Both the position numbers and the translations under genes were made by a program. From Bispira polyomma (lineage: Eukaryota): 64,000 nt of DNA. How positions within the stretch are numbered: position 1 is the first letter of the stretch; every line of letters starts with the position of its first letter. Below are positions 9,549 to 61,389 of the stretch, piece by piece. The stretch is taken from the NCBI GenBank assembly GCA_965649765.1, contig OZ287752.1:53630001-53694000 (forward strand), in the 5' to 3' direction. The notes beneath the pieces were generated by a model. The model searched no databases and was not told where the DNA came from. It saw nothing but the letters and a program-made list of their open reading frames with translations.

Positions 9549-9776
9549 TCACACGTCCTCATCCCTGGGTGGTGGCAATGTCCCCATCACATCTTCTTCC
9601 TCCTGTCTGTAGGGTGGGGGTTCAGCCTGTTCTCCTACAGGTTCTGGAGTACGAGTCCAGTCTATCTGAGTGTACACCGTCATCTGATCCTTACCGTGGA
9701 TGATGTTACCACTGGTCTGTGGACTGTACTTAGGGAAGTCTACCTTGATGTACACACAGCCATCCTCAGATACCTC
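9549..9776 (-). CDS. Gene A last exon (CVYIKV, ITSM TVYTQI, PPPY, C-terminal DEDV)
   Basis: ttatccag|GAG acceptor, phase 0, matching the previous exon; stop TGA at 9549-9551. Confidence 0.8.
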   Translation of the reverse strand, partial: EVSEDGCVYIKVDFPKYSPQTSGNIIHGKDQMTVYTQIDWTRTPEPVGEQAEPPPYRQEEEDVMGTLPPPRDEDV

Positions 9777-12700
9777 CTGGATAAGTTCAAAAGGAACCAC
9801 TATATGCAATGTACAATGACAATCGACATACAGTTCAAAAATATATACCTTTGTTGGACAAACTTATACAACTGATTTGTTAAATAATTACAACTGCTTA
9901 AATTAGAGGTATTTTTATCAAGAAAGTTTTAACATGTAATAAGACGAGTATATATTAGTTCCCCTAAAGTCATATGTATCAAGAATGATGTGGCAGATCT
10001 GGACGAAAATCAACTTTAAAATATTTAATAAAGGGGTCACACTATATTTTAGGAAGTAAACCGATCGATACTCATATGACATGTTTCAAGTGTGATATAA
10101 TTAGTAGAAGTTGTAGAAATTAGGCAAAAACTGAACAAATATGATGAATTGATATACAATTTCTCATCATTTATGCCTAAATTATTTTTACATCTAGTGG
10201 TAGATATATTAAACTAGTTATGCCTTACGTGAACTGTTTGTAAGGTTTACCTCTCTTATATTTGCAAATTTGTACTTATTTAGTATTATTTATTGTTAAC
10301 GCCTCAACATAAATTGCTTTGTAGACACTACAGCACTCACGAATCTAGACTAATAACATAACAGCCAAGGCTTCTATATCATCAAAGCATGTCACCATGT
10401 TTTAATCAAATAATTGATAGATCCTGGAGATGTATAAATATGAAAGTTTGACCAGTGTATCTGAATGTATTGATGCATAGGCTACCTGAAAGCTAAAATA
10501 GATTTTTCTGGATTGCCCTTCTTTTAGATATTCAAAGGATACTACTATGTAAATAAGTGATAATTGAAATATATAAATGTTTAGTCACAATTGTTTTTAA
10601 ATCAACGACTTCAGTAATAAACAAATAAGTTGTACTTTGTGTGTTAAATGATTACTAAAGTATGTTCTTCCTGATGTCTTTACAGTAACACTATACATAC
10701 CCGTATTGGTTTGGTGGCTAGTTTTGGCTTGGCTGCAATGGTAGGCTTAACTTTAACTGGTGACTGAACATCATCATATGGATTGTCACCTGCACAAAGT
10801 GATTGGTAAAAAGTTATAGTAACATCAAGAGTATTTAAGCATAATGATATAATTGCCCTCTATGGTCTGGTCACACCTACACGTGCTAATGTCCCCAAAC
10901 GTAGCAAAGCAATATAGATTGAAAACGTGGTAGTTTTGTGTCAAAGTGACGTCATTTTCATAAATGGGGAGTCAATTGTGACGTTTTGTGGTGTTTATTG
11001 ACGATGTTAACACTTATACACACCGACAGGGGAAATGGTACTGGGCCATAAGCAATGTCCCGGAATGAATGAACCAGGGATCCTCACTTGGGCATTACCT
11101 TCTACTAGCTTTCAAACCAGTTAAAAACGTCACACCATGTAGCTCCAGCACGTGTAGGTGTGACCAGGCTTCTACGTATCATGTGCGCACATGGTGCTGA
11201 ATAATACGACATACCTGTTTCTGGCGTTGGTGTTACTGGAGCCCCCTTCTTTTTTTTCGTCTTTTTGTCAACCTGGGCATAAGCATCACCTGTACAACGT
11301 TGAAAACAGATCAAATGAAACAGGTAAATAATGAAAGAGTTGTAAAAACGAGTATATATCGCCCTACCGTTCGCCACGTTATTACTAACCACAGCATAGA
11401 TTGTAGTCAATAAAAGAATATTAAAAGCAAATCCATTTTGCAATATTAATACATTAAAATAAAAAAAATTAACATTTTCAATACAATCAGTTTCGAATCA
11501 AGTTATATTTATATAGCTATCTATGTATATACAGGTGTATCTATTTTTTAACTGTACACACTTTGTTGTACAAATCTAAAAGTACAGTACCCGCCACTTT
11601 GTGTTTGTTCTTTTTCTTAGACTTATCAACCTCAGCATATGTGACAGCTGCAGTATCTGTAAAAAATAACATTGTAGTAAACCATGTATCATGATCTCAC
11701 CTAATTCATATTTAGAGGTTACTGGACTCATTAAGTTCCAAGATGTATATAACTTTTTATGATACCTGATGTTGCTTTGATGGTATATTCAGATGGTTTC
11801 TTATCAACATCTGCATGAAATGGTGGTTCCACATTGCCGATTTGATCCCGGACATTCCCGATTTGGAGGTCTGGTGCATCTCCGTATAGGTTTGGGAGTG
11901 AAAATGGGATGGTCGGAATGGTCGGCAAGGACATCAAACAAGTTTGATATTTTCTAACATTACTCCGACATACCTCTCTGGACCTCTAAATTGTATTGAT
12001 GGATACGTTTGATCGTATTGTTAATATGTTCTGTCGGATAGGTCTTACTGTACTCCAGGCTCGTACTATCCTACTCGGATTTTTCTTTTTTTTGATCAGA
12101 CAGAATGGGTCAGCACTAAGCTCGAAATTACTTGATCTGACGTATTGTGCCCTGACCGAACTTATTGTCACCCCAGCAGAACTTAGCGGAGTAGATACGT
12201 TTTTTTACCCCGATTGAACTGGCCACAGTAGAACGGAACATATTGAATATAGGATCTGCTGAGCAAGCTAAACGATTGAACGGGGGAGGATACGATCAAA
12301 CTTAAAACTAATAGGATCTGACGTATTCACTCCCGGCCAATAGGATTGAACTTTTGCTAATCGGGGTGTTTGGGTATAAAACCATCCCAGCAGTACTGGA
12401 CTCGTTGTATTGGGAGATTGCTGGCTGGTTTTTTCATCACACAACATTTATATATCATCACGATGCCTAGAGAAAGGAAGATGAAGAGGAAGATGGATAT
12501 GGAGAAGGAGAGATAGTTTGAAGTGGGAGTCTCGTCCGACGAAGTGGAGGTCCAGAGGAAGAAGAAAGACTAGAGGGCAAGTCCTGCCCTTAGTGAGAAG
12601 AGCAACACCAGAGAGGGATTGTTGGAATCATCCCAGGGATTGATGGAATCGTGCCAGGGATTGATGAAATCGTCCCAGGGATTGATGGAATCGTGCCAGG

Positions 12701-15700
12701 GATTGATGAAATCGTCCCAGGCATTGATGGAATCGTGCCAGGGATTGATGGAATCGTCCCAGTATAGAGGTCTCGTAAAGACGGCCGGAAAGATGGTGCA
12801 TGATATACTGACAGATGAGGAGGCCGTAGTTGAGTTTGTTAAAGACAATAAGGTCCTCTACCACAAGAGGCACAAACAGTTTAAGGACAGATTCCTGAAG
12901 GAGAGGTTATGGGAGGATTTGGCCACCAGTGAAGGCCTAAAGATGACCGAAGTGAAGACGTGGTTTGAGTCACAGTGCACCCGTTTGGGGTGTTGATGGC
13001 AAAGAAATCAGGGCAAGGAGCCCCAGAGTGTACTGACAGGGAGATCTGGCTCATGATTCGGTTTTCCTTCCGCAGATCATACATAGTGCGCCACGTGAAG
13101 TCTTCTGTATTCAAGCCATCTACCTTGTCTACCCAGGGAGCTTCCCCACCACATCAGGGAGCGGTACATGATTTGTCAAGGTGCTCTAGTATCGGTGTGG
13201 AAAGTGCAACAGAGACAAGCATGAGGAGCACACAGAGAAATTCTCCAGTCCGTCAGGTCTTCGATATCAACAGTTAGCTAGTTGAGCACCTAGGACACAT
13301 AAGGACAATGATGTCAACCTTTGTGGGTGAAAGCCAGAAGAAAGAGAAGCCCCAGTTGAATCAAACCGCTCAAGACAGATTGCTGGATGCAGTGGACAAA
13401 CTTGTTTAATTGTTATTTATGTGGACAGGACTGTGGTCAGGTCAGATTGGTTTCTTTATTGTATTATTGTATAATTGTATGGACTATTAAGAGTATCTCA
13501 GTTGACTGTAATTCTGTAATTCTGTTATTTTATTTGTTAAATAAATTTGTTAAGTGAAACTTTTTGTCTTTTCCTGTTACAACCTCCAAGCAACCGGTAA
13601 TTGCTACTTCCCTTGCTCCCGTGACCGTAACAATCATCATTGGTTACAGTAATGTACAGCAACTGACTGACCAGCAGCAACAGCCACTTGGATCGCTCAA
13701 CCAGCAACAGCCCAACGTCCTGCCCGTTTCACAGTCGCATCGCACTTCATCTCCACAGCGTAAACCGCAGTAGCCAGTCAGCAATTTGCAGGCGGTCATT
13801 TTCTGACCGCCATGGGTTAACCTCCAGCCCTTTCTTAGGGCCAACCTAATCTTTCACCAACAATATCTAAAGGTTTTTGTTAAAAATCACAAACAAACAG
13901 ATTACACCATCCATTTAAAAGCAATTCACACATACAGACAGAAATAAAAATATCATTGGCCCCAAACTTCAAACTCCAAATATTAGCCTAAAATATAATC
14001 CCAAACAAACAGATAAACACCGTCCCTTCAAAAACAATTCACACATACACACAGAAATAACAATATCATTGGCCCAGACTCACAATTCCAAAATATTAGC
14101 CCAAACAAACAGATTACATTCTCCTCTCCTTAAATGACAGTGGAACTCTCAGTATCAGAAACAAAGAAAGATCACAAAATTACCCAATTAAGAGAAATTT
14201 AGCATTTAAGAAAAAAATAACAGAAAATAAATGATTTAAAAACAATTTAGAAAAAACATAGAACCCCATATTTTGACATTTGTGCAATAGAAAGAGTTTT
14301 TCATGGACAAATAAACAAATTCCTGAGATATTCCTCTTCCAAACAAGTGGTCACACCACTTTTAATGTTTGAACCTAGTTTTGTCCCTAAACAAGTGGTC
14401 ACACAAATGACAAAGTTTGAAAAAGTGATCTTTAACAGGGAATGGGCCATGAACTATCTTTTGCTGGGAAATCTTTATGTTATATATTATGGGGGTCCCC
14501 AGTAGAACTGTACAAGGTCAGTGTAAGGCCTTGGGTTCGAATCTGTTACAATAATGAGTTTCTTTTATCAGTGTGTGTGTTTTGGTGAAAAAAAATTCAA
14601 GTTTGGTGGGGGTCTGCTATGTTTTTATGGTGGTGTTTTAAGGGTTTAGTGACGTAAACACATAAAACGATTGCCGATAACCATGTTATGTGTGCTCGAG
14701 CTTCTCAGAAACTACACAACTTTTTCTCTGTGGCCTTAAACCCGATTTATGGATAATATACTTACATTTTCATGATTAGAAATAACAAAGAATGACATAT
14801 ATTTTAATTATATACTAATTCATGTATTTTAAGTGTTATTTTCATTGATATCTTGAGACATACAATACATAGAGCAGTGTCTCATATTGCAACTAAAATG
14901 GGTAATATTTTCAAAGTACATGCTTCACAAACATGACACAATTCATATACCAAGAAGGGATCAATACTGAAGTATTGTACATGAATAGAATAAGGAAAAC
15001 ATCAGCATTAATTTGAATGAATTAGTTTTTCAAATAAAGCACAAAAACACTGCTAATTTCAGAAAAACATTAAAGTTACACTCTTCTGAACAGAAAGATA
15101 ATTTTTATTCTTTGTTTATATAAAATAGGGAAACCTATTTAAAAACCTATTTAAAAATCTAATTCATTCAAAATAATATACATGTTTTCTAAAGATGTTT
15201 AGGGTATATAATGTCTGCATTTGTGTTGGATCAATACTCGTACTGTGTCACAATAGACAAGGCTCTCTGCGAGAAATATTTACAAATATGACATTCTATT
15301 ATAGATTTCAAATTGTGTGATGTCACAAAACAAGGATCGTTATATGGTTGTTTTTGTGGTTTTATGGCAAAGTGTTAACCTTTTAATTTCTCTGGACATA
15401 TTAGAATAGTTAAAAACCTCACTAAAGTATACTTTTAAAGCTATCATAGTTGTTATACAGAGTAGAAATGTGCATTCGTAAAGCATCATACTTTATCACC
15501 GTCGTGTTTTTGTGTTTACGTTACTAAAGCCTTAAATGAGTTGTGATCGGGTAAGGGGGTAAGGGGTGTAACAAATAGCTCAGTAATTGTTCTTAAAATA
15601 TTTGGGCGGTCCTGAAAAGGACCTTTTTTGGTTACAGCTCAGCTCGAGATGGCTTCTCATCAGACCCAGACTAAGCTCAGGTCAAACTTCCGATTCACTC

Positions 15701-18700
15701 ATTTTGCCAAGGGACTGTCCCTTCATTTATGAAGTAGTCCATCAATGTGTTCCTTTGCTGTTTTGCTATTTTGCCCCTAGATCGATTCCTATCGTTGGCC
15801 AATTGATCCCCCACCAGCTGCTCCTCAGACTCAGGCGGATCATCTTAAGGGCTGGGGTCAGTTTGAAGCCTACCAGAGGATGCTGTTGCATGGTCGTCAG
15901 TAGAAGTTGGAACCTGCTGACCAATATACCGAAGGCATTCTGGACAACCCCCTTCCCCTTGATATCCTGTAATTACAGATCCTTTGGCGGTTAGTCAGTG
16001 ATCTCTTGAAGTAGGGTTTCATCAACCAGGACTTCAGGGCGAAGGCGTCGTCCTCCAGCAGGAAGTAGTTGACAACACGTATGGATCCCTCAAACAGTGG
16101 TGCAGGTTTGGTAAGCCCGATTGATATGTCTTCCAACTGTTCTTTTACTTCCGAGTAGTTGAATATTTGTGCGCCGGAACAGGAATCACTGATGATGGCT
16201 ACATGTTTCCCGTCAATACAGCTCACAGAGTAAGGGATTTTCCATCAGTTTCTGTAGACTTCTTCCGGCTTCAGCCAGTCAGAGGGGTGGTTTGGCAGGC
16301 TAGATTTTCTGTCTTGTATTCCTAGATAATGGCTTTACAGAGCTCTTGGATGAACTTGGTAATGCTTGATTTTCCCACCCTGAACTGATATAACAGGGAA
16401 CTGTAGCTCTCGCTGGTGGCCAGGTGCAAGTTTAAATCCAACATCTAAGGGCTTTCTGTACCAGGTTGTGGCTTTCTTGATATGGCGTTTGATCCTCTCC
16501 TTGATTTCCTGGAATAGGACTGACCTTTTCCGATGGTGGTCTTGGTTTCAATTCCTGTTGAGCTTTAGCCTTGTCTCTTTGATGTTGTAGTACGAGCATG
16601 AGGGAACACATTTCTAATTCAAAAAAGACTAAACAATCCCCTAATCTCCTCAAATATTCTCTCTTGTCGATTGCTGGGATTATCCTCAATTAGTTACTCA
16701 ATATTACATAACTTTTAGGGCTCAAAAAGGGTATATATAGGGTCAGACAGCGTCCCGACTTTATTTTAAATTTTTTTTAATCCTATAGGTCTGGATCATC
16801 AATCTGTCAGATCATATTGCCAATACATTCGATCCTAGGGCAATAGGTCACATCCTATCGCCAATAGGTTCGATCCTACCTGGGTAGAGAAGGTCGGGAA
16901 ACCTTGGAGTTCAAGGTCGTACAACCTTTAAGTTTGATCAGGATCGGTGTCCCGTAAAAATGGGGTACAATGAGGTTGATTGGGAAGGTTGCCCCACTTT
17001 TTTATTTTCCCGCCCCCAAAAAATTTCATTGATATCTTGGCCCCGACCGCCCCAATCTTAAAGTCAGGCCCATTTTGCCAATCAAGCTTGAATGAGGAAC
17101 CACCACTTACCTTGCAGTAAACAAAATTATAATAATTGAAACATTTCCTGTCGGGTATGAATGTCGGTAAAATGTTATGTAACTGTTTAGGGGAATTAGT
17201 ATTACCAAACAATTGATACAGACTTGAGTAAAGATATATCTTCTACTATACCTGCTATTGCTTCATCATTATTTTCTCCAGATAATTTCTGGTCAACATC
17301 TGCATACCCTTGTAGTAAACAAAATAGTACCAAACAATTGAGATATTTCTCTTTTTTTAATTTAGAGTTAATTTTAAATATTATGCCACTGTTTCGTGTA
17401 TCTAGTACAACTAACCTGTTCCAACAGACTGAATATAAAATAGTACTAAAATAATATTTGTTTAACACATATTTTAGTGGGAATTGTATAGCTACCTGAC
17501 ATAGCAAAAGCGTCATCAAACCCAGCATTTTCTTCCCCGGAAGCTTTGTCTCTAAAAATATTACCATTACAGTCTACAATTGTATAAACATAAAATGTGC
17601 ATATAAGATGAAAACATAAGGACTGGTAATAATAAAGAGAGCAAACATATTTACTTACGGTACACCACTATTCAGACGTTCTTGCCCTGTAAATCACATT
17701 ACATAGTTTGATATTACAGTATACAATAAAATTGCAAGATTGTTTCGTGCAGTTTGCTACATGTCTGGCAGTATTTTATATGATATAAATTGTCCACCAA
17801 AATATGACACAACAAATAATAAAACTTTTATTGTAACTGAAAAATCTGTAAATTTACTGAAATAATAGTCTGACATAATAGTTTTTATTACGCTTAAAAC
17901 ACCTAAAATGACTTGCCTTCTTTTCTGAATAATTTATTAATTCCAAGTTTATTTCTGTGAAAAACCACCAATCCAACCACTACAATGATCACCAGGATTG
18001 CAATCAGAGGACCAATTATAGCACCTATGTTAACTCCATCTTAAATAAGACAAGAATTGAACATATCAATATCTACCTACTCACGTATCTGTATATAATA
18101 GACAAGTGTAGTCAAATAATTAAAAAAACGAAAAGGTTTTACCTGGTCTGTATATAGGTGGATCAATTCCTTGAACAAAGGTTGCCATTTGATTGTTTCC
18201 TTCATAGACTTGGACACTTACTGAATATGATGCTTTATCATCAAATTCATCTGGAATTGTAACTCGCTCTTGAGTTGCGTTTACCGTACCATTAACAGGG
18301 TACACATGACTGTTGGCTGTCCCTTCCGCACTATAATTAAACTTTAAGCCCACAGCTACTTCTACCCTTTCCGATCTCTGTTGATTATAATCCCAGGTTA
18401 TTATCATTTCACTCGAAGAAATTGAGTCGATTTGAACGTTTTTAATATCAGGTAGACCTAAAAATTTAAAATAAAAACATTCTACAGTATTTTTTTAAAA
18501 CTAGATTTAATACAAAAAGTGTACATATTGTTTGTTAATTTCACTTCATATCGATCAATGTAAATATCGGTCTAACAATTTAATAATTGGAACACTTCAT
18601 CAATTTAAATACAAGGTGATATTTTTGCTCATGCTGAATTCATTTAAATTATGTTTACCTACATATTGTATTTGGGCAAATCATAGCATTAAAATTAATC

Positions 18701-21700
18701 TCACCAGTATTATAATGACAATCAAAAAATAGCAAACATTTAAAAAGTAAAAATATTTTTGAAATCATATATAGTTAACATAGTTAGAACAGAGCATCAC
18801 ACCTGTCTGTATGTGTTACCTGTTGTTTTGCTGTCACAACTGCAAACATATTCATTTGTTGTATTTATTCCTGTCCTCTGATTCTCCCCATGTATACGTA
18901 TACAATATTCTGTATGTGGCTGCAGTCTTTCAACAAGTACCTGAAGATGTGTACCTTCTATACCTTCTTGAGAACCCCGAAATGTCTGTATATATTGAAA
19001 ACTTGTGTCTGGATTACAATCTGGTTGACTGTGTTCACCAGATTTAATGGTGTAAATGACTGGAGGCATATTGCCACTACGACCTTCCTTCCACTGCACA
19101 GTGAGGGAAGAAGAGGTCATATTCGGAAGAATATAAAGATCAGTTGGTGATTCTGCTGGTCCTATTCAAGTAAACAAAACACTTAAAAATTGAAATTTGG
19201 TTTAATTTGAATGGCTGAATACTAAAACTTTTAAATCCCTTAGACATCCAACTAGCAGTAAAAGAATATTGGAAAGCAAAATTATTTCTTTTTATATGTG
19301 AAGAAAAATATGGAATTGTATAAAGTAGTATATGTTAAGAATTCTTTAACAAAATAAACAAAGAAAAATTAAAAATATGTGAGCAATCATTTAAAATTAG
19401 TAAACATTAAACAATGAACTACCAACAAACAAATTACGATAACATACCCATATTAAATAGAAGATACATACAACACATTCACATACCAAGTTCTCTCAAT
19501 TCTAAAGGAAAAGCCACTGTTCCTACTGTATTATTAACTTCACAATAATAAAAACCGAATGTTGAGTCATTTGTGAAAGCAACAGTATAGTTTTTCATTG
19601 TAGCGCCACTAATCTGTGAGGCTGTATCTGTCCCATTGAAATACCACTGGTAATTTGGCATTGGATTTGCACAAACTGGGCACTGAAGCACAACATTTAA
19701 TTCTTCAAATTCTGCTGCTTGGTATTTTTTGTCAGAATTCCATATTGCAGCATCTGTTGAAAATGTATATATATTGTAATCCTTACATGTATGATTTATT
19801 GAAGAGTGTTAAAACCATATAATACTAGTAATAACAATAAGTAATGGATTGATACCCATTAAACATACAGTGTGTTTCCACTATAACCGAGTTTGAGATT
19901 TTGGTTTCTTCTTCTCCAGCTGTAGTAGCAGTTGCCACACATTGATATACACTGTCATAATACACAACCCCTTCACAAGTATCAAATTGATGCTCGGAAG
20001 CCTTCCAATAAGATTCAAGTTTGTGTGCTTTACTTAATCCATTACAACCATTTTCACAAGCAATATCATTGGTTTCAGTTCCAAAGTAACGTTCATCCAA
20101 TTGTTTGTCATTTTTTTTTATGTACACAGTATTGATATTACTTGCTGATATGACACATGACAAGTTAAAATCACTAGATGTAGTTCCATTATAGACAGGG
20201 TTGTCCATTGAGAGTTTGAATTCTTCAAAGCTCACAGGGGCTAGAAAAAGTAAAAGCATTCAAATATTTACACATGGAGTAAAAAATCAATGAAAATTAT
20301 ATGACTTGTCTTTTAATGTTGTAACTATTACTATAATACAGTATAGTACCATACTTAGGCAAAAATAAAGTAGTACAATCTGAAATACCTTCTACAATTA
20401 CGTCAATGTCTTTTGATGAATTACTTGGACCTATGAAATTTCCTGCAATACAGTGATATATTCCACTTTCTTTGACACTAGTTGGAACAAAATCTTCCCA
20501 ATTTGTTGTGCCATCAATAATAGTATAATTATGAAGGAAACTTCTATTACTGTGCCATGCAATCCAAGAAGCATCAGGAACTCCAATTTCATTGAGTGTA
20601 CTTAGGTCACAGTATAGGGTGTAAGATTTCTCTATAGATATCGTGGAATCAGTAATTGATGCAACTGGCTCACCCTTTGGTGTATCTTTTGAAACAATAA
20701 AAAGTTTAGGCTATAATACTTTGATATATATGTTATAAATTTTATATGTCATCTGTAAAAGCTGTAATGCTGTGATACTCGAACAAAATAGCAAAATATT
20801 TGACCTGCAAACAATATTATTAAGTCATCAATTGCCATATAATGTCTGTATAAATATATTTCAGTACATACACTGTACAATAACATTCACTGAGGAGATA
20901 TCACCATTTCTTTGAACATTGCCACCACATGCTTGAAATTCATTTTCTGCTGTACATGTGAACATTCCAGCATCCTTGTATGTGGTAGATTCAATGTTTA
21001 AAGTCTGGTTCTCCTGCGAACCTGTAGGGTAACTCCAACCATAATCTATAATATTTGGTCTGGCATCAGCATAACAAGTCAAAGACAGTGGATTTCCTTC
21101 AACTACCAAAGTGCTACCAGTGACATTTACATTTCGTGGATGATCTGAAATAGAATTAAGGAGATGAACAATCGATTTCACTTCAGTAATTATATGTAAT
21201 TACGAAAACACAATCTGTAAATATAACATATATACTCACTGTGCTTATATTTAAACATAAATACAGGACTATAAGGCAAATGTCACACCAGCATATACAA
21301 TGTAATGCACAATATTACTCTATAACTAAAGTTAATGATCTCTTCCTGTAAAATTTTACAGATGGGCTAGTGATTTATCCTTAATGGTAATTATTTATAA
21401 TTTTGAATTAGTTTGGTCGTATTCACAAGTTATTTAACACATTGATAAACATATTTTAGGCAAGTTCCTTATGTATATATACAGTGTTACGTATATATCA
21501 TTGAACCAATTTCATATACATATTTTCAAATATTCATAATTGAAATAATTATTTTTTAAAAGTTTTGTCTGGATACAATTGATAACAATAAAATTACTAT
21601 GCAATATTGAATAATGTTTTTAGTGTTTTTTTTAGGAAAAGCTACATTTATTCTGGCTTTCGTGTAATAAAATAGCTTTGGTAATTTTGAAATTTATTCC

Positions 21701-26925: not shown

Positions 26926-27370
26926 ATTGTTGAATGGAATGGCATAGGATGGATGTTGTAAAAACTTGTTATATGCTCGGGTATTTCCCATCAATACACC
27001 ATTTAATCATTTAATACGTTAATGTCATCAAGTTAAATCTATTCACAGCTTGACAAATACGAATGCAGATAAGTATAATATACAGATAAGTACATCAGAA
27101 ATGATAACAGTAGAAACAAGAACAGTAATTAAAACATGATGTAGTATGAAAGTTCCCCGTTGCAAATTTACATGAATAATTTCCATGTGAAAAAGCACAT
27201 ATCCTTGTAATAAATTATAAAACAATTGTTTTGGCCTACGAAATAGTATTAGCGCTACAGTAGTGGTGTTTTATTATTGTCTTAACTTATATGGCAGTGT
27301 AGCTCAAAGTTCACAGCGACTTTGATAACACATATTTTCAGTGTACTGCAGTTTTGCCTATAAGGTAAAC
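26926..27370. promoter_or_regulatory. Putative bidirectional promoter between genes A and C, with kappaB-like sites
   Basis: 445 bp between divergent ATGs; GGGTATTTCCC (26979-26989) and GAAAGTTCCCC (27148-27158). TSSs are not visible from sequence. Confidence 0.45.
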
Positions 27371-34002: not shown

Positions 34003-34005
34003 TAA

Positions 34006-41860: not shown

Positions 41861-41871
41861 CATAATTACAG

Positions 41872-44618: not shown

Positions 44619-44811
44619 ATCAGAGGAGACATATTAAATGTAATATATTTAAATATGACACTGCTAGCTCATTAATTACTATTAATAAGTGTGTGTTTAA
44701 TCGACAGTGTTAAACTTACAGAGTTCTGGGCAGTGCAAACTTATACAAAGACAAGATTTTAAATCTATCTGGTAGATACATAGTCAATCTTTAATTACTA
44801 ACGTAAAAGTG

Positions 44812-45997: not shown

Positions 45998-47626
45998 GAC
46001 ATAAATCACAGTTTTGTAAAAAAAGAAACAAGTAAAAAGCTGGTAGAGTAAACAGAAACCAGTAAATTTAAAGACTGGTAGTACTTTAAATCTAATATAG
46101 ATGGGCTCATTAGTAATTATATTAAAACTATTTTTGGCTATTTGAAAAGCATATTAACTTCTGCAGTTGAATTAGAAAATGCAAATGCTACTCTTGTTTT
46201 GAGTTAAATTGTAAATATGCTAATATCACTGGAAAGGGCTGTTACGAGTTTTCAGAATCCAGTAAATGTACAAATTGGTAGTAATTTAAATCTGAAATAA
46301 CATGCCTAATTTATGACTAATTATAGTAAAAACAAATTTGAGTATCAAAAATTTGTGTTAGCTTTGGATACTGAATTAGAAAATGCAAGAGTAATCCGAA
46401 GATTTCAACCAAAATATTGTGGAGTAAATCTGCTGTTACAGTACTGGATACTAAGGGTGTGACGAGGACCTAAATGTGAGCTCTTGGTGATCGCGGAAAA
46501 GGCTGGCATGAGCTTTTAAAAACCAGTAAATTTTTAAATTGTCAGTACATTCTTATCTATATTTAATGTAACATGCCTAAATTATGGCTAATTGTAGGTT
46601 TAAAATAATGTGTTAGTTTTGTTAAAGTAATGTCAATTTTTGTTACTTATTATTAGAAAACATAAATGTTCTTTTTTTTATCTCCTTTAGAGTGAGATCA
46701 CCAAATGGTTAAAGTAATTAGTCAGCTGTTTATCTTGCCAGGGGAGCACTGTTATTTTGATGTTAATATTCAACATGGAAAGCTTTCATTTAGTAAAACA
46801 TGCTGTCACATTTGAAATATCATCTACTATTGGTAGAATGACTTTTGGTTTTTTTAGTTAAATTGTAAATATTCCAGCTTCACTGGTACAATGTATTATG
46901 ATCTGTTTCAAAGATTTCAACCAAAATACTGTTGTAGTATATATGCACTTACAGTAATGATTACTAGATACAACTTAGATAGAGCAAGAGTGCAAGAGTG
47001 CCTCAGATAAAATTACTTGTCATTTGTTTTACCCGGGAACACTATTGTGTTTGATGTTAACACTCAATGTTAACGTGAACATTAATGCAAAGAGTTCACC
47101 TATTCAGTGTATTGTAATTGAGTTGTATGCATAAGATCAAAGATTTTTTGGCTTTTCACTTGGTTAGTGCAAGACTGCCTTAGTTAAAGTAACATATCAG
47201 TTCTTTGTTTTGCCCGGGAAACACTATTGTTTTGATGTTAACACTTATTACTTATGCGAATGTATTTGGATTACTTTGTTGGCATTAGATCATTCAAATA
47301 CCTTTTAATATCCAAAGTATTGTATACAAGGGAAGCTTGTACAAGAATTATCTCACAATTACTTATCATGTTTGTATCTAAGTGCTGGTGCGTGTTGTGG
47401 TTTTTTTTATTGTAACAAATGCCATACTTTGTGGTTCAATACAAATGAAGAATTATTTGTCAGTAGTAGAAAATATTCATGTTGTGAAAAGTTTTGTACA
47501 AGTATACAAAGTTTCATGTTTAAAAAGTATTTATTTTTTAATTATAACTTGTTGGAAACGATTGTTTGCGAATTGGTATCTCTGGTTCATTCTTCTTGTC
47601 TGTAGGGAGTCCCATAGTAAATTTCG

Positions 47627-50600: not shown

Positions 50601-50685
50601 TGAAGAAGTAATAAAAAATAAATATTTAGAGCAAGAATACTTGGCTAAAATAAATTTGAATTATGACGACTTTAGAAAGGTATAG
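47627..50685 (+). pseudogene. LINE ORF2: APE endonuclease - reverse transcriptase - zf-RVT, disrupted
   Basis: SVNCQGLR, GDFN, RLDYFL, SDH; PGLDG, IDFEKAFDSV, GCRQEDPISP, QFADD; CRLC..HLLSEC. Stops, frameshifts and an apparent deletion near 49930. Confidence 0.93.
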
Positions 50686-51274
50686 GCAAGATGGAATAAC
50701 CTATTCCCGAAACTATAAAAATCTTAACTTAAATACTGATGTATGCTCTGTGTTTATCCTATTTAAGATCCAACAGGTTGTTAAAGCTATTTTGTATACT
50801 TAAAAATTAAAAAAATATCTAGTTATCATATGGAGTCAAATTGAACCACCACAGTTTGGTATTGCATTGTTACAATTTTTTCTTTGTGTAAATGTACATA
50901 TGTATATAGAATTTGAAAAATCTGCCATTAAAGAAGTTTTTGGGGTTTTTTTTGTGAGAGGTACAAATATCATGGATATCTCTGCTGTCGGGGGTATTCA
51001 ATATTTTTGTAAATGGCAGTGTAAAATAGTATAAATAAAAAAAAAAAAAAATGAACTTATACCTTATAACTTAAGTGGACTGATTTAATTATGAATGTAA
51101 TGTCAAACACTTCACCAACATACCGTCACATTGATTTCATTTGTCACTATTGTCTGATCTCATGATTCTATTCAACAGCATATTAAGACTCGGTGTATAA
51201 TAAATGGAGTATTATTAACAGAGTTAACATTCTATGTATAATTGTGTGGCTAAACAATGAAACATTTAACCTGT

Positions 51275-51560
51275 CTTGTATTTTCTTATCTTGTGTTACA
51301 TTGCTGGAGTCTTACATTTACCATTGAACCTAAATATGTTGAAATCGGTGGCACAATAACTTTAAACTGTAGTCTAGATACCCCAAAGTCAGAGTCTGAG
51401 TTTTTTCGCATACATAGCATAGCTTGTATTTTCTTATCTTGTGTTACATTGCTGGAGTCTTACATTTACCATTGAACCTAAATATGTTGAAATCGGTGGC
51501 ACAATAACTTTAAACTGTAGTCTAGATACCCCAAAGTCAGAGTCTGAGTTTTTTCGCATA
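51275..51560 (+). repeat. 138-bp tandem duplication with CATAGCATAG filler
   Basis: 51275-51412 = 51423-51560. Confidence 0.92.
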
Positions 51561-53974
51561 GCCTGGCCTGGACAGTTGCTTGGTCAAATCTGTACAGTTG
51601 ACTGTTGGTTGGATGAAGCCTGTTATTATGACATAGATCCAGGTTCTTGTAAATGTGATTCCAAAGACACAGATGTAGGCAGACCTTGTCCTGAATTAAC
51701 TGAAAGTGTATCATACACAGTATCTGGTGTAACTACTGACATGTCTGGAGACTGGCTCTGTGAATTGGAGACTAGTAAAAATGCTACTTATTCTCTTCAG
51801 GTGTATGGTGAGAGTATTTTCTTTTATTTTCACATTATGGAAATATAAAGTAATACATAATATAGTTAATTATTTTATAAAACATTTACACACACAAACA
51901 CAGGAAAAACTTTAGTTTATACTAATATGTAAGTATTTTTATTATAACCTGTTATTTTCTGGATTTCCATGTGAACATTTTTGCTACCATAGTTTATATA
52001 GCACAATCATATATAGATGAGATAAATATGGAGAACATGGGTTATGTAGTAAGTAATGTGATAATATATTTTAGAGTAACACTGCCTTAAGACTTAAACT
52101 TTTTATTTCTATATATGTGTACATAATTATATGATAATTAAACTGTTATGTTTCTTTTCAGATTTATCAGATGAACCATATTTAGAAGGTAATTTTAATA
52201 CCATTATAAATACAAGTGAAACTTTTACATGTACTTCTATGGGTGGTTTTCCGCTGGCACAGTTTGAATGGTTCATTGGAGATGAAGTTGACATGTGTAA
52301 TGTTACTGATGAAGCCACCCCTGGGATTGGTAAAAGTACATTACTCTATACAGCACAGAGAAATGACAATGGTAAAATATGACTTGTGTTGTGAAACAGC
52401 TGGAGGGCATGCAACAGAGAATAGACAGTTATCAGTTAAACATTTTATGTAAGTGATTTTACTTGCAAATTTTTATGTTTATATAATAACTCAACCACAA
52501 ATAGAGCTTACTAGTAATAATAGCATGAATAGTATTAAGTAGTTTCATTGTATGGTGATTTAAAAGTGGATTGTTTATCTTCCAGTATTGCCAATGTCGT
52601 AATGCCAGATAACATTACTAAATAATATGTGAATACACAATTAACTTTTAAAAATTGTAATTGGTTAAAATACCCAAAAAAGGCTGACAATTAAGGACAA
52701 GTAATCAGAAGACAAAATACTCCAATATTACCAAAACAATACCATCAAGCATGCAATGGCAACAGTTTTGTACAATATAAATACCTGGAAATATTAAAAT
52801 AATTACACATGGAGGAGAAGTTAAAGTTGGACCTTGTAAACCTAAGCATAGTGTAGAAGAAGAAAAACCATTAAACTTACTATGCAATGTAACAAGAGAA
52901 GGCAACCCAACAGTGCATTCATACATGTGTTAATAACATTATGTAAATGATTGTGTAAATAATTACTTGCTGAAAATAGATCAGTCTCTCTATGTTTTAT
53001 TTCTAAATGGTTAAATTATTCAAATCTTTTAAATTTTGACTTGTATATGTATATGGATGGCACCATTATTAGGGTACAAGTAATGATAGAAGCTTCGAGG
53101 GGGTATCCCTCACAATATTTAATGGTATTAAAGTGTATAGTATGATGTTGACCTACCAAGCAGACAACATTAATATGTAATAATATGTGAGCAGAAGCGG
53201 ATAATGGCCATGTAGTTTTCCATCATTTACAAAAATAGTGGCTTAAGATGGCCTGAACCCCTTAAACACACTTGCAGAATAATATCAGTATAGATAATTA
53301 CAGCTATAATGTGTGCTACATCTCCACAGGAACTTTAATGGTGAATTGGCATCGTTCACAACACCAACATTTTCTGTCAGCCAAAGCCAGTTAAATAATA
53401 CTGGTAACTACTCCTGTTCTGCAGTGAATGGTATTGAAGAAGGGAAGATATCATCACACCTTATGGTACAGGTTCTCTGTAAGTAACTTATTTGTATCAT
53501 TACAATATACCATTTCATAACAGGTTGTGTTTCAGCTTATTGTCTGAAGACTGAAAATTAGCTGAGGAATGGTAAATGCTAAGTAGTCACACATGATCTG
53601 CACTATTTCACAAACAGAATACTTTACAAGTAAAATTCATTATTATATTTTGAAGTCTGCTATTTGTTGTGATATTATCTCTTCATCCTTGTTTTCTTTA
53701 AACAGTAAGTGAAACGAAGAGTGCTCATTGAACAATAGTGGGTTACCGTTTATCAGTTTTGAATACAAATGTCACATAAGTACTGAGATTGGTCTTTTAT
53801 AGATGGTCTGCAGATGGTGTAAATATTGTATTAGAACAACTCTCATAACATTGGTGATTGGAATAAATTTCAAAATCACCAAAGCTATTTTAAAACACGA
53901 AAGACAGAATAAATGTAGCTTTTTCTAAAACAAAATACTAAAAACTGAGTATGATTCAATATTGTATAGTAACT

Positions 53975-55735
53975 AGGTTGATTAGGAGCTGATTAGGTTT
54001 TGGGGGTATCTGGCAACAACTGTTGCCATGGCAACGCTTTTAAGATTTTGGGATCTTAAACTTTGAAGGTGTTCCACAGGCTAAATCCATGCATGGATTT
54101 TCACCAAATTTTTAGCATATGTTTACCCTGAGAGGATCTACTAAGATTTTGGGGGTCTTAAACTTTGTGAGTGTCACACAGCCTAAAGCAATGGATGGAT
54201 TTTCAAAAAATTTTCATGAAAGGTTTGGGTTCTGTATACTTCTAACTTTTTAACTTATTCCTTACATTTTACCAAATCTCAATGTTGTTGCCCATTTTAG
54301 TTGTACCTGTAGGCTGGGGTTTCTGCCTGCTGAGGCTTGTTATTATTTTTTAATCCCAGCCCACAAAGGCTGGGGTCATAATCGTTGCCTGCGCCGTACG
54401 AGCGGCATCGGTGGAAGCGGCGGGCATAAACTTTGTGGATGTTCCACATGCTAAACCCATGTATATGTTTAACCCACTATATGTTTACACCAAGAGGATC
54501 TACAGCTGTTTAGGTTTTCTGGGGTATCTGGGAGCCACTGTTACCATAGCAACGCTTTTAACATTTTGGGGTCTTAAACTTTTTGCGTGTCCTACAGGCT
54601 ACACCCATGCATGGATTTTGACCAATGTTACGGTCATGGGAGCTAGGCGGTAGCAATTACTGGTTGCTTTCAAGTTGTAACAGGAAAAGACAAAAAGTTC
54701 CACTTAAATTTATTTAACAATTAAAATAATAATTACACAATTATAGAATTACACAATTACAGTCAACTGAGATACCCTTAATAGTTCATACAATAATGAA
54801 ACCAATCTGACCTGACCACAGTCCTGTCCACGTAAATAACAATTAAACAAGTTTGTCCATTGTATCCAGCAATCTGTCTTGAGATCCGCTCGGTGTCCAC
54901 TAACACACAATGCCTGTATCCTGTTATCCGTGCGGTCAACGAACACAAAATGTATATATACAGAGAGTCTGCACAACAAAGCTATTTAGTCCAGGATGCA
55001 AAAAATATCCAATATGCAGCAAACCTAATCTCTGGTAGATCCGCAACTTTATATCCAGTTCACTCCAATGAGTTCACCACAAAATGTATATAATAATCAG
55101 TTTATATCCACAGGAAAAGAAATAAAATGTTTCACAGAATAGCAGTTCATATAGCACATCAACTCAATAAACTCTAGTCTGTGGCCAGGCTTTAAACCCT
55201 TATATATACCACTGCTAGAGAAGGCTCTAGAATATATAAACAATTCCTAGAAGATTCCAGAATGAGATATAAACATATTAACACAACTTCAATAACAACA
55301 GAAACAAAATAAAACCAGCTTCTAGAAGCATAGGGGTTTTCCCAAATCTATAAATAGATCACTCTAGCAGAGTGTAAGAAACATCATTACTAACCAGACC
55401 AGTTCTCCACTGACATACAACAATGTCCTTATATGTAAGACCAAATTTTCAGGATATGTTTACCCTAAGAGGATCTCGAGCTAATTAGGTATTGGGAGAT
55501 ATCTGGCAACAACTGTTACCATGGCAACATTTTTAAGATTTCGGGGTCTTAAACTTTGTGGGTGTTCCACAGGCTAAAACAATGGATGGATTTGCACCAA
55601 ATTTTAATGATAGGTTTGGGTTCTGTATACTTCTAACTTTTTAACTTATTCCTTACATTTTACCAAATCTCAATGCTGTTGCCTATTTAGTTGTACCTGT
55701 GGGCTAGGGTTCCTGCCTGTCGAGGCTGGCTATTT
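53975..55735 (+). mobile_element. Helentron-associated non-autonomous elements (HINE/DINE-like): truncated copy 53975-54340 plus full copy ~54351-55732
   Basis: Subterminal IR CCCAGCCCACA / TGTGGGCTAGG, 3' palindrome GCCTGTCGAGGC, T-rich flanks, ~150-bp internal core repeats; absent from the equivalent gene A intron. Confidence 0.75.
54626..55440 (-). mobile_element. Solo LTR (815 bp) nested in the HINE
   Basis: TGTTAC...GTAAGA ends, 4-bp TSD CCAA; minus-strand TATA (~55200) and AATAAA (~54708). Confidence 0.78.
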
Positions 55736-55953
55736 TTGGGACTGTTGGTGTTATATTTTGAACTATATAAGCATGACAATTATATTGTGTCAGTGGATAA
55801 AACATGTGAAACAACTCTTGTGGTGTATATTAAAAATATATATGACTCAAGAAGATAAAACACACAAAACTCGCCCTGCCGGGCTCATATTGCATCGATT
55901 ATCTTATTTCGTCATATATTTTAAAATATACATCACTGAGATAGTGTTACTAT

Positions 55954-55991
<38 letters not shown>

Positions 55992-57584
55992 AATTTTACA
56001 GTAAGGGATCATTAACTTTATTTATAGAGTAATATTGTGCATCAGACTGTATAAGCTGGCGTGACTATTGCCATATAGTCCTGTATTTAGGTTTTTATAT
56101 AAACACAGTGAGTATATATGTTATATTTACAGATTATGTTTTTGTAATTACATATAATTAGTGAAGTTAAATTAATTGTTCATCTCCTTAATTCTATTTC
56201 AGATCATCCACAAAATGTAAAAGTCACTGGTGGCACTTTGGTAGTTGAAAGAAATCCACTATCTTTGACTTGTAATGCTGATGCTAGTCCAGATACCATA
56301 GAATATAGCTGGACTTATCCCACAGGCTCACAGGAGGGACAGACATTAGTCATAGGATCTATCACACACAATGATGCTGGAATGTTCACATGTATAACAA
56401 AAAATGAATTTGAACCATGTGGTGGCTATGTTCAAAGGGATGGTGACAACTCCTTAGTGAATGTTATTGTACAGTGTATGTAGTGAAATATATTCATACA
56501 TATACACGTATTAGATGGCAATTGATGACTTAATATTGTTATGTTTGCAGGTCAAATATGTTCACTTTTGTCCGAGTATCACAGCATTATATTTTATACA
56601 GATGACATTTAATGAGTAGAACATAGGTAATATATATATATTATAGCCTTAACTTTTTTTTTGTTCTAAAAGATACACCAAAGGGTGAGCCAGTTGCATC
56701 AATTCCTGATTTTACAATATCTATAGACAAATCTTACACCTTATACTGTGACCTAAGTACACTCAGTAAAACTGGAGTTCCTGATGCTTCTTGGATTGCA
56801 TGGCACAGAAATGGAGGTTTTCTTCACAATTATACCTTTATTGATGACACAACAAATTGGGAAGATTTTGTTCCAACTAGTGTGACAGAAAGTGAATTAT
56901 ATCACTGTATTGCAGGAAATTTCATTGGTCCCAGTAATTCATCAAAAGACATTGACATAATTATAGAAGGTATTTCAGATTGTACTACTGTTTTTGGTGA
57001 TTGTATTATACTATACTGTATTATACTAATAGTTAAAACCTTAACAGACAAGTCATGTAATTTTCATTTTTTTTTCACTCCAAGTGTAAATATTAGAATG
57101 CTTTTACTTTGTCTAGCCCCTGGGAGCTTTGAAGAATTCCAACCCTCAATAGACAACCCTGTCTATAATGGAACTATATCTAGTGATTTTAACCTATCAT
57201 GTGTTGTATCAGCAAGTAATATCAATGATGTGTACATTGAAAAAAATGACAAACAGTTGGATGAACTTTACTTTGGAACTGAAACCAGTGATATTGATTG
57301 TGAAAATGTTTGTAATGGATTAAGTAAAGCACACAAACTAGAATCTTATTGGAAGGCTTCAGAGCCTCAATTTGATACTTGTGAAGAGGTTGTGTATTAT
57401 GATGGTGCATATCAGTGTGTGGCAAGTGCTACTACCGCTGGCCAAAGAGAAACAGAAATCTCAAACTCGGTCATTGTGGAAACATACTGTATGTTTAATG
57501 GGTATCAATTCATTACTTACTGTTATTACTGTCATAAAATGTAATTTAAATTATTGAGTGATAAAAACTGTTTTAATATACTTT

Positions 57585-57589
57585 AGTAT

Positions 57590-57648
<59 letters not shown>

Positions 57649-57664
57649 ATATATATATATATAT
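57585..57664. repeat. (TA)n microsatellite
   Basis: Long TA run. Confidence 0.95.
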
Positions 57665-58540
57665 TTTAAACAGATGCTGCAATATGGAATTCTGACAGAA
57701 AATACCAAGCAGCAGAATTTGAGGAAGTGAATGTTCTGCTTCAGTGCCCAGTTTGTGCACATCCAGTTCCAAATTACCAGTGGTATTTCAATGGGACAGA
57801 TTCAGCATCACATATCAGTGGAGCTACAATGGAAAACTATGCTGTTACTTTCACAAATGACTCTACATTTGGGTTTTACTATTGTGAAGTTAGTAATGCA
57901 GTAGGGACAGTGGCATTTCATTTAGAATTGAGAGAACTTGGTATGTGAAAGTGTTGTATGTATCTTCTATTTAATATGGATATGTTATAGTAATTTATTT
58001 GTTAGTAGTTCATTGTTCAATTGATACTCATTTTAAATGATAGCTCACATATGTTAGTTTTTTTTTGTTCATATTGTTAAGGAATTCTCTTCTGAGAAAC
58101 AGTATTATTTATTGATATTAATTTATACAATTTCATATTTCTCCTCATGTAATATTCTTTTACCGCTAGTTGGATGTCTAAGGAATATAAATGTGTGAGT
58201 ATTGAGCCATTAAAATTAAAACAAATTGCAATTTTTAAGTTTTTTGTTTACTCTTATAGGACCAGCAGAATCACCAACTGATCTTAATATTCTTCCGAAT
58301 ATGACCTCTTCTTCCCTCACTGTCCAGTGGAAGGAAGGTCATAGTGGTAATATGCCTCCAGTTATTTACACCATTAAATCTGGTGTACACAGTCATTCAG
58401 ATTGTGGTGAAGACACAAGTTTTCAATATATACAGACATTTCAGGGTTCTTAAGAAGGTTTACAAGGTACACATCTCCAGGTACTTGTTGAAAAACTGCA
58501 GCCAGATACAGAATATTGTATACGTATGCATGGGGAGAAT

Positions 58541-58934
58541 CAGAAGACAGGGATAAATACAACACATGAATATGAATGCATGTGTGACAGCATATACAAA
58601 AGTATGTATATCAAAATAAATATCCACTGTATTATTTACTTTCATAGACTATTGATTATAATATGCATATATGCATATGTGACAACAAAGCAGCAAGCAT
58701 GTATGTCAAAATAACTACCCACTGTATTACTTACTCCCAGAAGACAGGGATAAATACAACACATGAATATGAATGCATGTGTGACAGCATATACAAAAGT
58801 ATGTATATCAAAATAAATATCCACTGTATTATTTACTTTCATAGACTATTGATTATAATATGCATATATGCATATGTGACAACAAAGCAGCAAGCATGTA
58901 TGTCAAAATAACTACCCACTGTATTACTTACTCC
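58541..58934 (+). repeat. 197-bp tandem duplication across the FN3-1 donor site of gene B
   Basis: 58541-58737 = 58738-58934; CA microhomology at the junction. Confidence 0.92.
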
Positions 58935-61389
58935 CATAGACTAATGATAGTAATATTATCTGCAAAATTAATGAAGCTATAAATAGGTTAAACAGGTAAA
59001 CCCAAATAAAATTAAACCATAACATGTGTAGTAATTGTTTTATGAACATGTTTTTAACTTTATAGGTATGCCAAATATTAGAGGGTTTCTTATTGACTCA
59101 GTAACATTTCAGAACATAGATATTTCTTGGACATACACTATCAAGCAAGTTAAAGAAAATCTTGCCAAAAGTTTTGTTAGTTTGACATTCGAGTACAGCC
59201 TTGAGGATAACATTGAGTTCCAAACATATCCCATTAATGGTAAAATCAATGCCATTGCCCAGCAGGTGTCAATTCCTGGTAATTTTGATGGTGGTTCCGC
59301 ATATATTGTGAAGGTACAAGTTTGAAGGAAATAATTTACACGAAACACCAATACCTGGAATTAATCCTCCACCATACAAACCAGGTAAATATGTAAGATT
59401 GATAAATGCCTTAGCTTCGAAAGTTTTGTTTTGAAGACTGACAGTGGAGATGCTTAATCAGAAATGTTACTAGGAATTACAATGAAAATGTTATAATCAG
59501 TAGGGTTGGCTTGATATAACATCCTTATCACTAACTTATTATATTTGAAACAATGCTGAAACTTTATTTATATATTTTTATGTTAACAATAATATATCCA
59601 TTTTATTACAACTGGGCGATAGTAATCAGTAAAACAATGACAATTAAATTATATTAAATGTGAAAATCTTCTTTATTGCTTTATCAATCATATTAAAATG
59701 TGGAAATCTTCTTTATTGTTTTATTAGAAACAACATACCTTTCGGTCGGGACCATTATGGCAATAGTGTTGTCTGTTCTAATAATATTGACAGCTGTTTT
59801 AACTTCCATTTTGCTTTTTCTTGGAGTTATAAAGATTGACATAAATTGGAGAAGGAAAAGTGAAGAGCCTGGGTGAGTTTGTTTTGCTTGATAGTTAAAA
59901 AATTATTAACTACAGTATTTGTAACTTTAAGCATTGTTGTAAGAAGACCACAAAGGCACCATACGACTATTGTACATATTATTAAACTTATAGCACCAGA
60001 TAAAACCTGTTTAGAATTATTACTTTCTGAACAAGAAACAAATGAGTAGGCATTATAATTAATTGTAAATAAGCAATAGCTTTTTATCATCAAATCATAA
60101 TTTTATAAAATTAATTACTCGTTTTGCAGGAATTCAGCCCATGTCTATGAAAGTACTGGTAAGATTTTGTTATTATTTATATCAACATTACTGCATTGTG
60201 GTGACATTATAAGTATTAACTGAATTGATTACCCAGGAAACCAAGTCTTCAATATTATCGTATTACATTAAGGAGTCATATTTCTTTGTTGTGGTATTGA
60301 TTCCTTGTTTTGCAGAACTTTCTGACTGTCAGCCACAAGATAAGCCATATTCTGATCTCCAATTGTATCACAATCAAGGAGACCTAAATACCAGCTCTGA
60401 AACAGACATACATGAAAATGCCCTGTATGAAGTGCTACCATAGAGCTCTATGGATTTTTTTTTTAATATTTTGCTAATTATGTATACAATGGAAATGATG
60501 CAATAATACTGTTTTTTGAACGTCACAGTTACATTATTATGCAAATTGTTGTTATGTATTTGTGCATGTACGTTTAAGTGACAGGCATGTGGAAAACTCT
60601 AAATCTATGTTCCTTAAAAAAAATATGTCAGAGTGAGGTCAATGCAAGGTTTTGTGCAATGTGTGCAAACAGAGAATAATACTGTACAAGTATCGATCAA
60701 TAGTAAAGGTACAATCTATGGGGCTGTCATTAAATTACATGACTATAATTTTTAATATGTTTATGATACAGACCAAAAGTCCACAAGAAACACAAAGTGA
60801 GGCAATGTGATTTCATTATGTCATGGAACTGAATCCTTAATATCAGAATGACATATTAGGATTTTATTGTGGACAATTTACCTGAAGATTAATGCAGTTT
60901 GTAAATTTAGTAGTCTCCAATGCACTATTGCTATAATACATTACGTTTTAACAATAAAATGTGTGGAGTCAGTGTGTTGCATGCAAAGACATACAACTTG
61001 ACAAAATTAGACAAAGCTTTATATCGATTGTATTAGACGTAGATTATACTAGAAAAGCTTCCCAATGCTACAGTTTTTGCAATAACCTTGTTTTAATCTG
61101 CATATTCAGTTTAGCTTCAGTTATCATGGTAGCGATGGTATTAACACATATTTGAGTGTGATATACTAAGGGAATATCACTAAGGAGTTCAGCCTATTTT
61201 AGGTTACCGTAAAGTATGAATAAGCATGTACTAAAAGTTGTAATATATTAGTGAGGAATAAGATTCAAGTTCCCCAAGTACATACAAAAATATGTTATCA
61301 GTATATCAGTAATACATGCAGCAATAAATCGCAAACCTCTTCAGACAAAATTAGGGACTACAGAGGGGTGCTTTTAAACCATAATACAT

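Follow-up and report, generated by a model that had tools for sequence, protein, structure and literature searches.

A Bispira polyomma cluster of immunoglobulin-superfamily genes with ectodomain and tail evolution resembling that of vertebrate paired receptors

Introduction

Paired receptors of the immunoglobulin superfamily (IgSF), such as Siglec-11/16, Siglec-5/14, CEACAM1/CEACAM3, LILR and CD300A/C, are kept alike by gene conversion (PMC3533184, PMC5701461, PMC2832619), and conversion of the ectodomain is a described hallmark of Siglec-11/16 and of the CEACAM pairs (PMC5701461, PMC2832619). Other described systems of related layout are the Alr receptors of Hydractinia (PMC9546547), FF/FcoR of Botryllus (PMC12582321), tgrB1/tgrC1 of Dictyostelium (PMC13648343) and nephrin/Neph3 (PMC2736951). 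Our literature search returned invertebrate immunoglobulin (Ig) receptors with immunoreceptor tyrosine-based inhibitory or activation motifs (ITIMs or ITAMs) from Hydractinia, Botryllus and oyster, and did not find a two-species gene-conversion pattern in a protostome. Here we analyse a stretch of 64,000 nucleotides of Bispira polyomma (GCA_965649765.1, contig OZ287752.1, positions 53,630,001 to 53,694,000 of the forward strand; hereafter the window), in which an earlier note, made from the sequence alone, had proposed an inhibitory receptor (A), an ITAM-like twin sharing its ectodomain (B) and a short-tailed partner (C). All three proved to be real IgSF genes, and comparison with a second species indicates that the ectodomains of A and B group by species and their transmembrane (TM) segments and tails by type.

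Results

Ectodomains follow species and tails follow type

Gene A lies on the minus strand and consists of 18 coding exons (24056..9549) with AG/GT splice ends and one GC donor; its reading frame runs through 1165 codons with zero stops and encodes seven Ig domains, two fibronectin type III domains (FN3; FN1 and FN2), a TM segment and a tail of 213 amino acids (aa). Six-frame translation and self-comparison reveal an inverted duplicate (18.8–24.1 kb versus 51.4–58.6 kb) with 82–88% nucleotide (nt) identity including introns, in which B matches A's block 18820–24054 (Ig1–FN1); FN2, TM and tail then differ, the last two as the earlier note had described.

When the spliced gene models were searched exon by exon against large protein collections, the clear relatives were exon-sized open reading frames (ORFs) only, and those traced sit on host contigs of ENA assembly ERZ22147071. 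This host is another species, given that its counterpart of A (relA) is 57% identical to A in aa, with a synonymous divergence (dS) of 1.13. relA has the exon layout of A and a full A-type tail (VTYAEV, AVYAEV, NPYDDV, CVYIKV, TVYAQI). About 160 kb from it lies relB, with a B-type TM segment and tail (YENT, YTDL-x-YKN, YEQL) and all 13 exons checked open (13/13).

Across Ig1–FN1, aa identity is 71–85% between A and B and 66–81% between relA and relB, versus 44–69% between species, and it falls in FN2 in both pairs (37% for A–B, 48% for relA–relB), so that the break lies at FN1|FN2 in both species. The TM exon is 62% identical between A and relA and 42% between B and relB, compared with 28% for A–B and 32% for relA–relB. 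In a tree of concatenated ectodomain exons, A joins B (support 100/99) and relA joins relB (84/85), and the approximately unbiased (AU) test rejects A+relA (p-AU 7e-10); the TM exon, of 47 columns only, separates A-type from B-type (96/99), and there the AU test rejects A+B (p 0.013) and relA+relB (p 0.022). Both within-species pairs fall below the species distance in dS (0.17 for A–B and 0.55 for relA–relB, against 1.13 for A–relA). On the basis of these identities, AU tests and dS values, the two tail types predate the species split, and both lineages have renewed the local ectodomain on each of them, as far as one shared exon boundary. Species-wise ectodomains joined to type-wise TM segments and tails read as the concerted-evolution signature of paired receptors.

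Gene A and its tail

The ectodomain of A comprises, in order, a cysteine-rich V-type Ig1, a C2-set Ig2, a split Ig3, Ig4–Ig7 and FN1, before FN2. The structural model of Ig1 (predicted local distance difference test (pLDDT) 79) matches V domains, the fold being V-type with a cysteine-rich insertion. The tail carries eight tyrosines, including VTYAEV (an ITIM) and TVYTQI (an ITSM, the immunoreceptor tyrosine-based switch motif), both within the open 1165-codon frame, which bears out the earlier claim for these motifs. Among shuffled A tails, an ITIM plus an ITSM occurred in 1.0% and six YxxI/L/V sites in 0.02%. Tail and TM exons are 62–77% identical between A and relA, above most Ig exons, with a ratio of non-synonymous to synonymous divergence (dN/dS) of about 0.11; the last exon of the tail is single copy in the genome. 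The tail exon that is split by transposon DNA (Table 1) is short and phase-symmetric, and skipping it keeps the frame; a cryptic acceptor would leave a 45-nt in-frame remnant that lacks the tyrosine. At the other end of the gene, the ATG of the candidate signal exon stands 446 bp from that of C, and an alternative candidate (27084–27186) has a weak donor.

B is a pseudogene

B is a pseudogene with five or more lesions (Table 1). Short-read contigs (from three DNA runs of one study and at most two samples, possibly the source animal), compared with the window over 57700–60600, agree with it there without a single difference and run across three lesions: the stop, the frameshift in FN2 and the joint of the 197-bp duplication. 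These three are therefore not slips of the assembly, and that explanation was rejected for them. No signal exon of B was found, and a long interspersed nuclear element (LINE) ends immediately upstream. This LINE contains ORF1, then a NADAR/YbiA-like stretch (45.5–45.8 kb), endonuclease and reverse transcriptase (RT) in broken frames, and poly(A) at 51035–51052.

The tail of B (YEST, YSDL-x-YHN, YEVL) is homologous to those of relB and of A5, a further gene of the cluster, so that intact B-type tails do exist in the family. Its two YxxL motifs are 25 residues apart, a spacing that fits neither the ITAM consensus (YxxI/L-x6-9-YxxL/I) nor the wider pattern tested (YxxL/I-x6-12-YxxL/I), and its TM segment is uncharged; B is thus neither an ITAM receptor nor an adaptor-coupled activating one, and the proposal of an ITAM-like twin is withdrawn.

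Gene C and its head-to-head place

The frame of C is open, and its product has a signal peptide, two Ig-fold domains, a TM segment and a tail of 8 aa. A Pfam scan matched neither domain. The model of domain 2 (pLDDT 68) matches C-type Ig domains at Z about 8, the best matches being tied near Z 8 with SYG-1 and Rst D2 among them; domain 1 gave only weak Ig matches. The two Ig-like domains, the 8-aa tail and the head-to-head position that the earlier note gave to C are confirmed. Derivation of C from domains of A was rejected, as profile comparisons of C domain 2 with Ig6, C domain 1 with Ig1 and C domain 2 with Ig1 were not significant.

All C-like loci in the genome (3/3) stand head-to-head with an A-like Ig1 (Table 1). 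In the second species, the C orthologue relC (49% aa identity, dN/dS 0.26) is head-to-head with relA, 5.7 kb from the Ig1 of relA, and the arrangement of A-like and C-like genes that the earlier note had seen once therefore recurs both within the genome and between species. The relative has another C-like gene (L023), which was rejected as an allele of relC because the two align only in exons (70–77%).

The wider cluster

Cluster genes were annotated in the window and 200 kb downstream, with positions counted on from window base 1. The genome has 12 matches to the Ig1 exon or the Ig1 profile, and all of them fall within about 230 kb beginning at the window, which is the edge of a cluster of ~240 kb with about ten A-like genes or relics. 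A5 (160.9–148.7 kb) is an intact gene of seven Ig and two FN3 domains whose short tail is of the B type; A3 and A4 have three Ig and two FN3 domains, open exons and short tyrosine tails; and A2, A6, A7, A8 and A9, together with fragments, are broken. In A7, an A-type Ig1 (72%) is joined to a body that is 88–92% identical in nt to A4, and in A3 an A5-type Ig1 (78%) is joined to an A4-type body: Ig1 exons have been swapped between bodies. In the B. polyomma genome B has died, and A5, A3 and A4 remain as intact relatives with short tails. The relative also holds genes of three Ig and two FN3 domains. In this subfamily (A3, A4, A7, A8), the tail tyrosines AYEIP and TYAQL/TYEQL are conserved in both species, and near-identical bodies carry different Ig1 types (L006 9416–9541 on the minus strand, and L025/L028). 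A domain-deleted member of the relative (L026:9986–14770) joins four Ig domains without FN3 to an A-type TM segment and proximal tail.

A search for C2-set Ig domains placed at least about 136 of 147 genome matches, by hand count, on the same chromosome, mostly at 11–27 Mb; this single 16-Mb stretch appears to be a very large IgSF receptor complex and, given the share of matches on the chromosome, the A/B/C cluster is a small outlier of an IgSF expansion that is far larger.

Transposons are abundant across the region. Two inverted copies of a 1.16-kb element (5829–6990 and 62838–64000, 99% identical) flank the whole A–C–B segment and could promote inversion of the block; the second copy runs past the window end. 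A DIRS-like relic with RT and tyrosine-recombinase-like frames occupies 37650–43200 and has direct repeats at positions 37658 and 43027, and an integrase relic of a long-terminal-repeat (LTR) retrotransposon lies at 30600–32100. Elements related to the Harbinger-like insertion in A sit downstream of A4 and A7. The mitochondrion uses the invertebrate code (AAA Lys, ATA Met, AGR Ser), which rules out vertebrates, echinoderms, hemichordates, tunicates and cnidarians as hosts. A piece of COX2 had no close match among named sequences; the last exon of A gave one Atlas match (0.89, with Mollusca as the commonest group) that is no more than a lead, and the Atlas matches of C domain 2 were uninformative. 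In the mitochondrion, rrnS lies on the opposite strand before cox1, cox2 follows cox1 directly, and a long inverted-repeat non-coding stretch precedes atp8.

Table 1. Features of the A–C–B segment and of the head-to-head pairs, in window positions
Feature	Position	Strand	Remarks
Gene A, candidate signal-peptide exon	26874..26925	-	17 codons, consensus donor, phase 1
Gene A, ectodomain cassette (Ig1 to FN3-1)	18820..24056	-	9 exons, block common to B
Gene A, FN3-2 exon	18143..18457	-	first exon outside the block shared with B
Gene A, TM exon	17917..18039	-	helix without charged residue; 62% identity to orthologue
Gene A, proximal tail	17252..17686	-	three short exons; GYADV in the last
Composite transposon DNA	11766..17112	.	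~5.3 kb, Harbinger-like ends and ORF relics; splits A tail exon
Gene A, ITIM VTYAEV	11628..11645	-	identical in second species
Gene A, tail exons (AYAQV, NPYDDV, KP-rich stretch)	10701..11289	-	conserved in second species
Gene A, last exon	9549..9776	-	CVYIKV, ITSM TVYTQI (9663-9680), acidic end; 67% identity to orthologue
Gene C	27371..29306	+	4 exons, 295 aa; head-to-head with A
Gene C, exons	27371-27434; 27857-28165; 28501-28896; 29188-29306	+	signal; V-like domain; C-type Ig fold; TM and 8-aa tail
Head-to-head pairs	C/A; C2/A4 117.1/116.1 kb; C3/A5 162.0/160.9 kb		counted on from window base 1
LINE with terminal poly(A)	44850..51052	+	at expected place of B promoter/signal exon
Pseudogene B, A-like Ig1-FN1 cassette	51450..58601	+	inverted orientation
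Pseudogene B, 5' lesions	51275-51560; 52376		148-bp tandem duplication; Ig2 frameshift; also Ig1 acceptor (AG) lost, Ig3a splice sites lost
Pseudogene B, 3' lesions	58451; 58541-58936; 59321		TAA; 197-bp tandem duplication; FN2 frameshift
B-type FN2, TM and tail	59066..60443	+	TM exon 59728-59872; tail exons 60130-60158, 60316-60443

Discussion

We consider it somewhat better than an even bet that this lineage-specific IgSF cluster evolves, and probably works, in the manner of vertebrate paired receptors, with A recruiting phosphatases as a receptor and C serving A as co-receptor or ligand. A ligand engaging Ig1–2 of A would lead to phosphorylation of tail tyrosines (VTYAEV, TVYTQI and other YxxV sites), and the phosphorylated tail, by established ITIM/ITSM biology, would recruit SH2 phosphatases and adaptors and damp the cellular response. 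Repeated copying of Ig1–FN1 within each lineage has kept a short-tailed B-type twin matched to the ectodomain of A, so that the two could bind the same ligand with different outputs; by analogy, the output of the twin may be activation, internalization through YxxL, or that of a decoy. C, which lacks a signalling tail, is most likely a partner co-expressed with A, probably transcribed from the shared upstream region and acting as a cis co-receptor (as Botryllus FF may with FcoR) or as a trans ligand (as TgrC1 with TgrB1); the linkage is observed, and the binding is proposed by analogy. Immune surveillance would be the likeliest setting, the turnover being driven by pathogens or by self.

This paired-receptor-like reading draws on the species-wise ectodomains and type-wise TM segments, the swapped Ig1 exons, the divergence of the relB haplotypes in Ig1 and Ig2, the head-to-head C-like loci, the conservation of the tail motifs of A across species at dS above 1 and the many pseudogenes of the cluster. 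Several points weigh against it. B itself is dead, and the TM helices of B, relB, A5 and A4 are uncharged, their short tails having neither ITAM nor hemITAM; opposite signalling by the twins is therefore hypothetical. The output of the B-type twin is the weakest step, given that the relB tail ends in VQYEQL, which fits the ITIM consensus. Of the module proposed by the earlier note, the shared ectodomains and type-specific tails hold in two species, and the activating twin does not. C2 and C3, two of the three C-like copies, are frameshifted (C3 within an (AT)n run), a TM exon of relC did not turn up in a span of 10 kb, and the other C-like gene of the relative (L023), which sits on a separate contig, lacks an A-like Ig1 in the 9.3 kb upstream of it. 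For A–B and relA–relB, dN/dS is 0.55 and 0.26, and no value exceeds 1. The comparison covers two species only; the two contigs that carry relB (aa identity 81% in Ig1, 88% in Ig2 and 96–100% in Ig4–FN1) were treated as haplotypes from 99% identity over 17 kb; and the locus was found in none of the RNA runs searched. YxxL/V motifs are short sequences that adhesion and guidance receptors carry as well.

An unlikely alternative makes A and C a pair for adhesion or wiring in development, of the nephrin/Neph kind (SYG-2/SYG-1, Sns/Kirre) and co-regulated by a shared promoter, in which the tail tyrosines would recruit Nck-type adaptors rather than immune phosphatases and the duplicates would be by-products. 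Nephrin has eight Ig domains and one FN3 domain and Neph has five Ig domains and a long tail, and the 7 Ig + 2 FN3 of A and the two domains and 8-aa tail of C resemble neither. Although the multi-Ig plus FN3 layout of A, its YDDV site, the fold of C domain 2 (similar to SYG-1 and to Rst D2 as well as to further C-type Ig domains) and the head-to-head position of mammalian nephrin and Neph3 (PMC2736951) would suit such a pair, no relative of nephrin, Sns or Kirre was among the Ig1 profile matches in 1.8 billion proteins, Ig2 and Ig7 yield generic Ig matches only, and genes as conserved as those would not be expected to turn over fast, swap exons and diverge between haplotypes. Orthology of A to nephrin/sns, which would have counted against the proposal of the earlier note, was rejected on these searches. 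We are similarly doubtful of a narrower version of the paired-receptor-like reading, in which A and C would form a linked allorecognition receptor–ligand pair like TgrB1/TgrC1, matching alleles binding in trans and the ITIM/ITSM of A turning rejection off. Such a pair would be consistent with the recurrent and conserved head-to-head linkage, the lack of a signalling tail in C, relB haplotype divergence concentrated in the membrane-distal domains, and the head-to-head, clustered, mosaic and pseudogene-rich organization of tgrB/tgrC pairs (PMC13648343). However, a second allele of A or C was not seen, the haplotype data come from relB only, most C copies (2/3) are broken, and linkage of the Botryllus FF/FcoR type can equally mean a cis heterodimer (PMC12582321).

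It is also improbable, in our judgement, that the locus is neutral duplication debris, that is, a functional A and its neighbour C in a transposon-rich array, with B-type copies that have no paired role and head-to-head repeats that arose passively. Most copies are indeed broken, the region is filled with transposons, conversion occurs in tandem arrays without selection, and dN/dS stays below 1 throughout; yet the TM segment and tail tyrosines of the B type are conserved from one species to the other, relB is intact in every exon checked, relA–relB dN/dS is 0.26, and in both lineages exchange ends at one shared exon boundary. At the opposite extreme, there is a slim chance that a protostome independently evolved a complete missing-self system, with an ITIM/ITSM receptor, a linked polymorphic self marker or co-receptor (C) and activating twins whose tyrosine code is not that of an ITAM, matched by gene conversion, on a chromosome with a very large IgSF receptor complex.

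In vertebrate immune receptors, concerted evolution of an inhibitory Ig receptor with a twin of another tail is the classic mark of pathogen pressure. If confirmed, the paired-receptor-like reading would imply a convergent origin of paired-receptor logic and would provide small candidate proteins (Ig1–2 of A, the ectodomain of C and the two tail types) for tests of self and non-self.

Comparison with known systems

By sequence or layout, A, B and C belong to none of Alr, Tgr, FF/FcoR or nephrin/Neph. Nephrin/Neph3 (NPHS1/KIRREL2) and SYG-2/SYG-1 likewise place a long, tyrosine-tailed Ig + FN3 protein head-to-head with a shorter IgSF gene (PMC2736951), but differ from the Bispira pair in domain counts, in the 8-aa tail of C, in the absence of sequence matches and in that the latter belongs to a multicopy, fast-evolving cluster; neither conserved orthology nor the arrangement of 8–9 Ig + 1 FN3 with a 5-Ig, long-tailed partner was found here. 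Dictyostelium tgrB1/tgrC1 are also a head-to-head pair of Ig-like membrane proteins, with duplicated pairs, pseudogenes and recombination between paralogues (PMC13648343), but these amoebozoan proteins have IPT/TIG folds and no ITIM/ITSM, and allele-specific trans binding has been shown there only.

Like the Bispira genes, Hydractinia Alr genes encode clustered single-pass receptors of V-set, Ig and FN3-like domains, with divergent tyrosine-motif tails, many pseudogenes and variable membrane-distal domains (PMC9546547). Alr proteins combine one to three Ig domains with a single FN3-like fold, bind homophilically and include 14 members with true ITAMs (PMC9546547), whereas the Bispira layouts are 7+2 and 3+2 without an ITAM, and a linked tailless partner is not described in Alr; none of the 21 Ig1 profile matches is an Alr. 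Botryllus FF/FcoR are adjacent cognate IgSF pairs of an invertebrate, one member with tyrosine motifs (ITIM) and one without, in which copy number changes by pairs and other members carry non-canonical tyrosine motifs (PMC12582321). Adjacent signalling and non-signalling genes duplicated as pairs were found here at all three C-like loci and at relC. The Botryllus proteins have Sushi and EGF-type parts in place of the 7 Ig + 2 FN3 of A, no hemITAM occurs in Bispira, and co-expression and an allorecognition role are documented in Botryllus only.

Kinship with vertebrate paired receptors is of the generic Ig kind only. The Bispira genes have FN3 domains, a cysteine-rich V insertion and a protostome-type host, the twin has no TM Lys/Arg or ITAM, and activation by it is hypothetical; an activating member, with a short tail and Arg/Lys in the TM segment or with an ITAM, was not found. 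Among the properties that define paired receptors (PMC3533184), those found here are similar ectodomains, an ITIM-tailed member (at motif level) and a small gene cluster, together with ectodomains homogenized within species and tails by type. As in vertebrates, clustered IgSF genes comprise an ITIM/ITSM receptor and a twin with a species-homogenized ectodomain and a different TM segment and tail, in inverted orientation (in Bispira), with a pseudogene twin comparable to SIGLEC16P and with birth and death of members.

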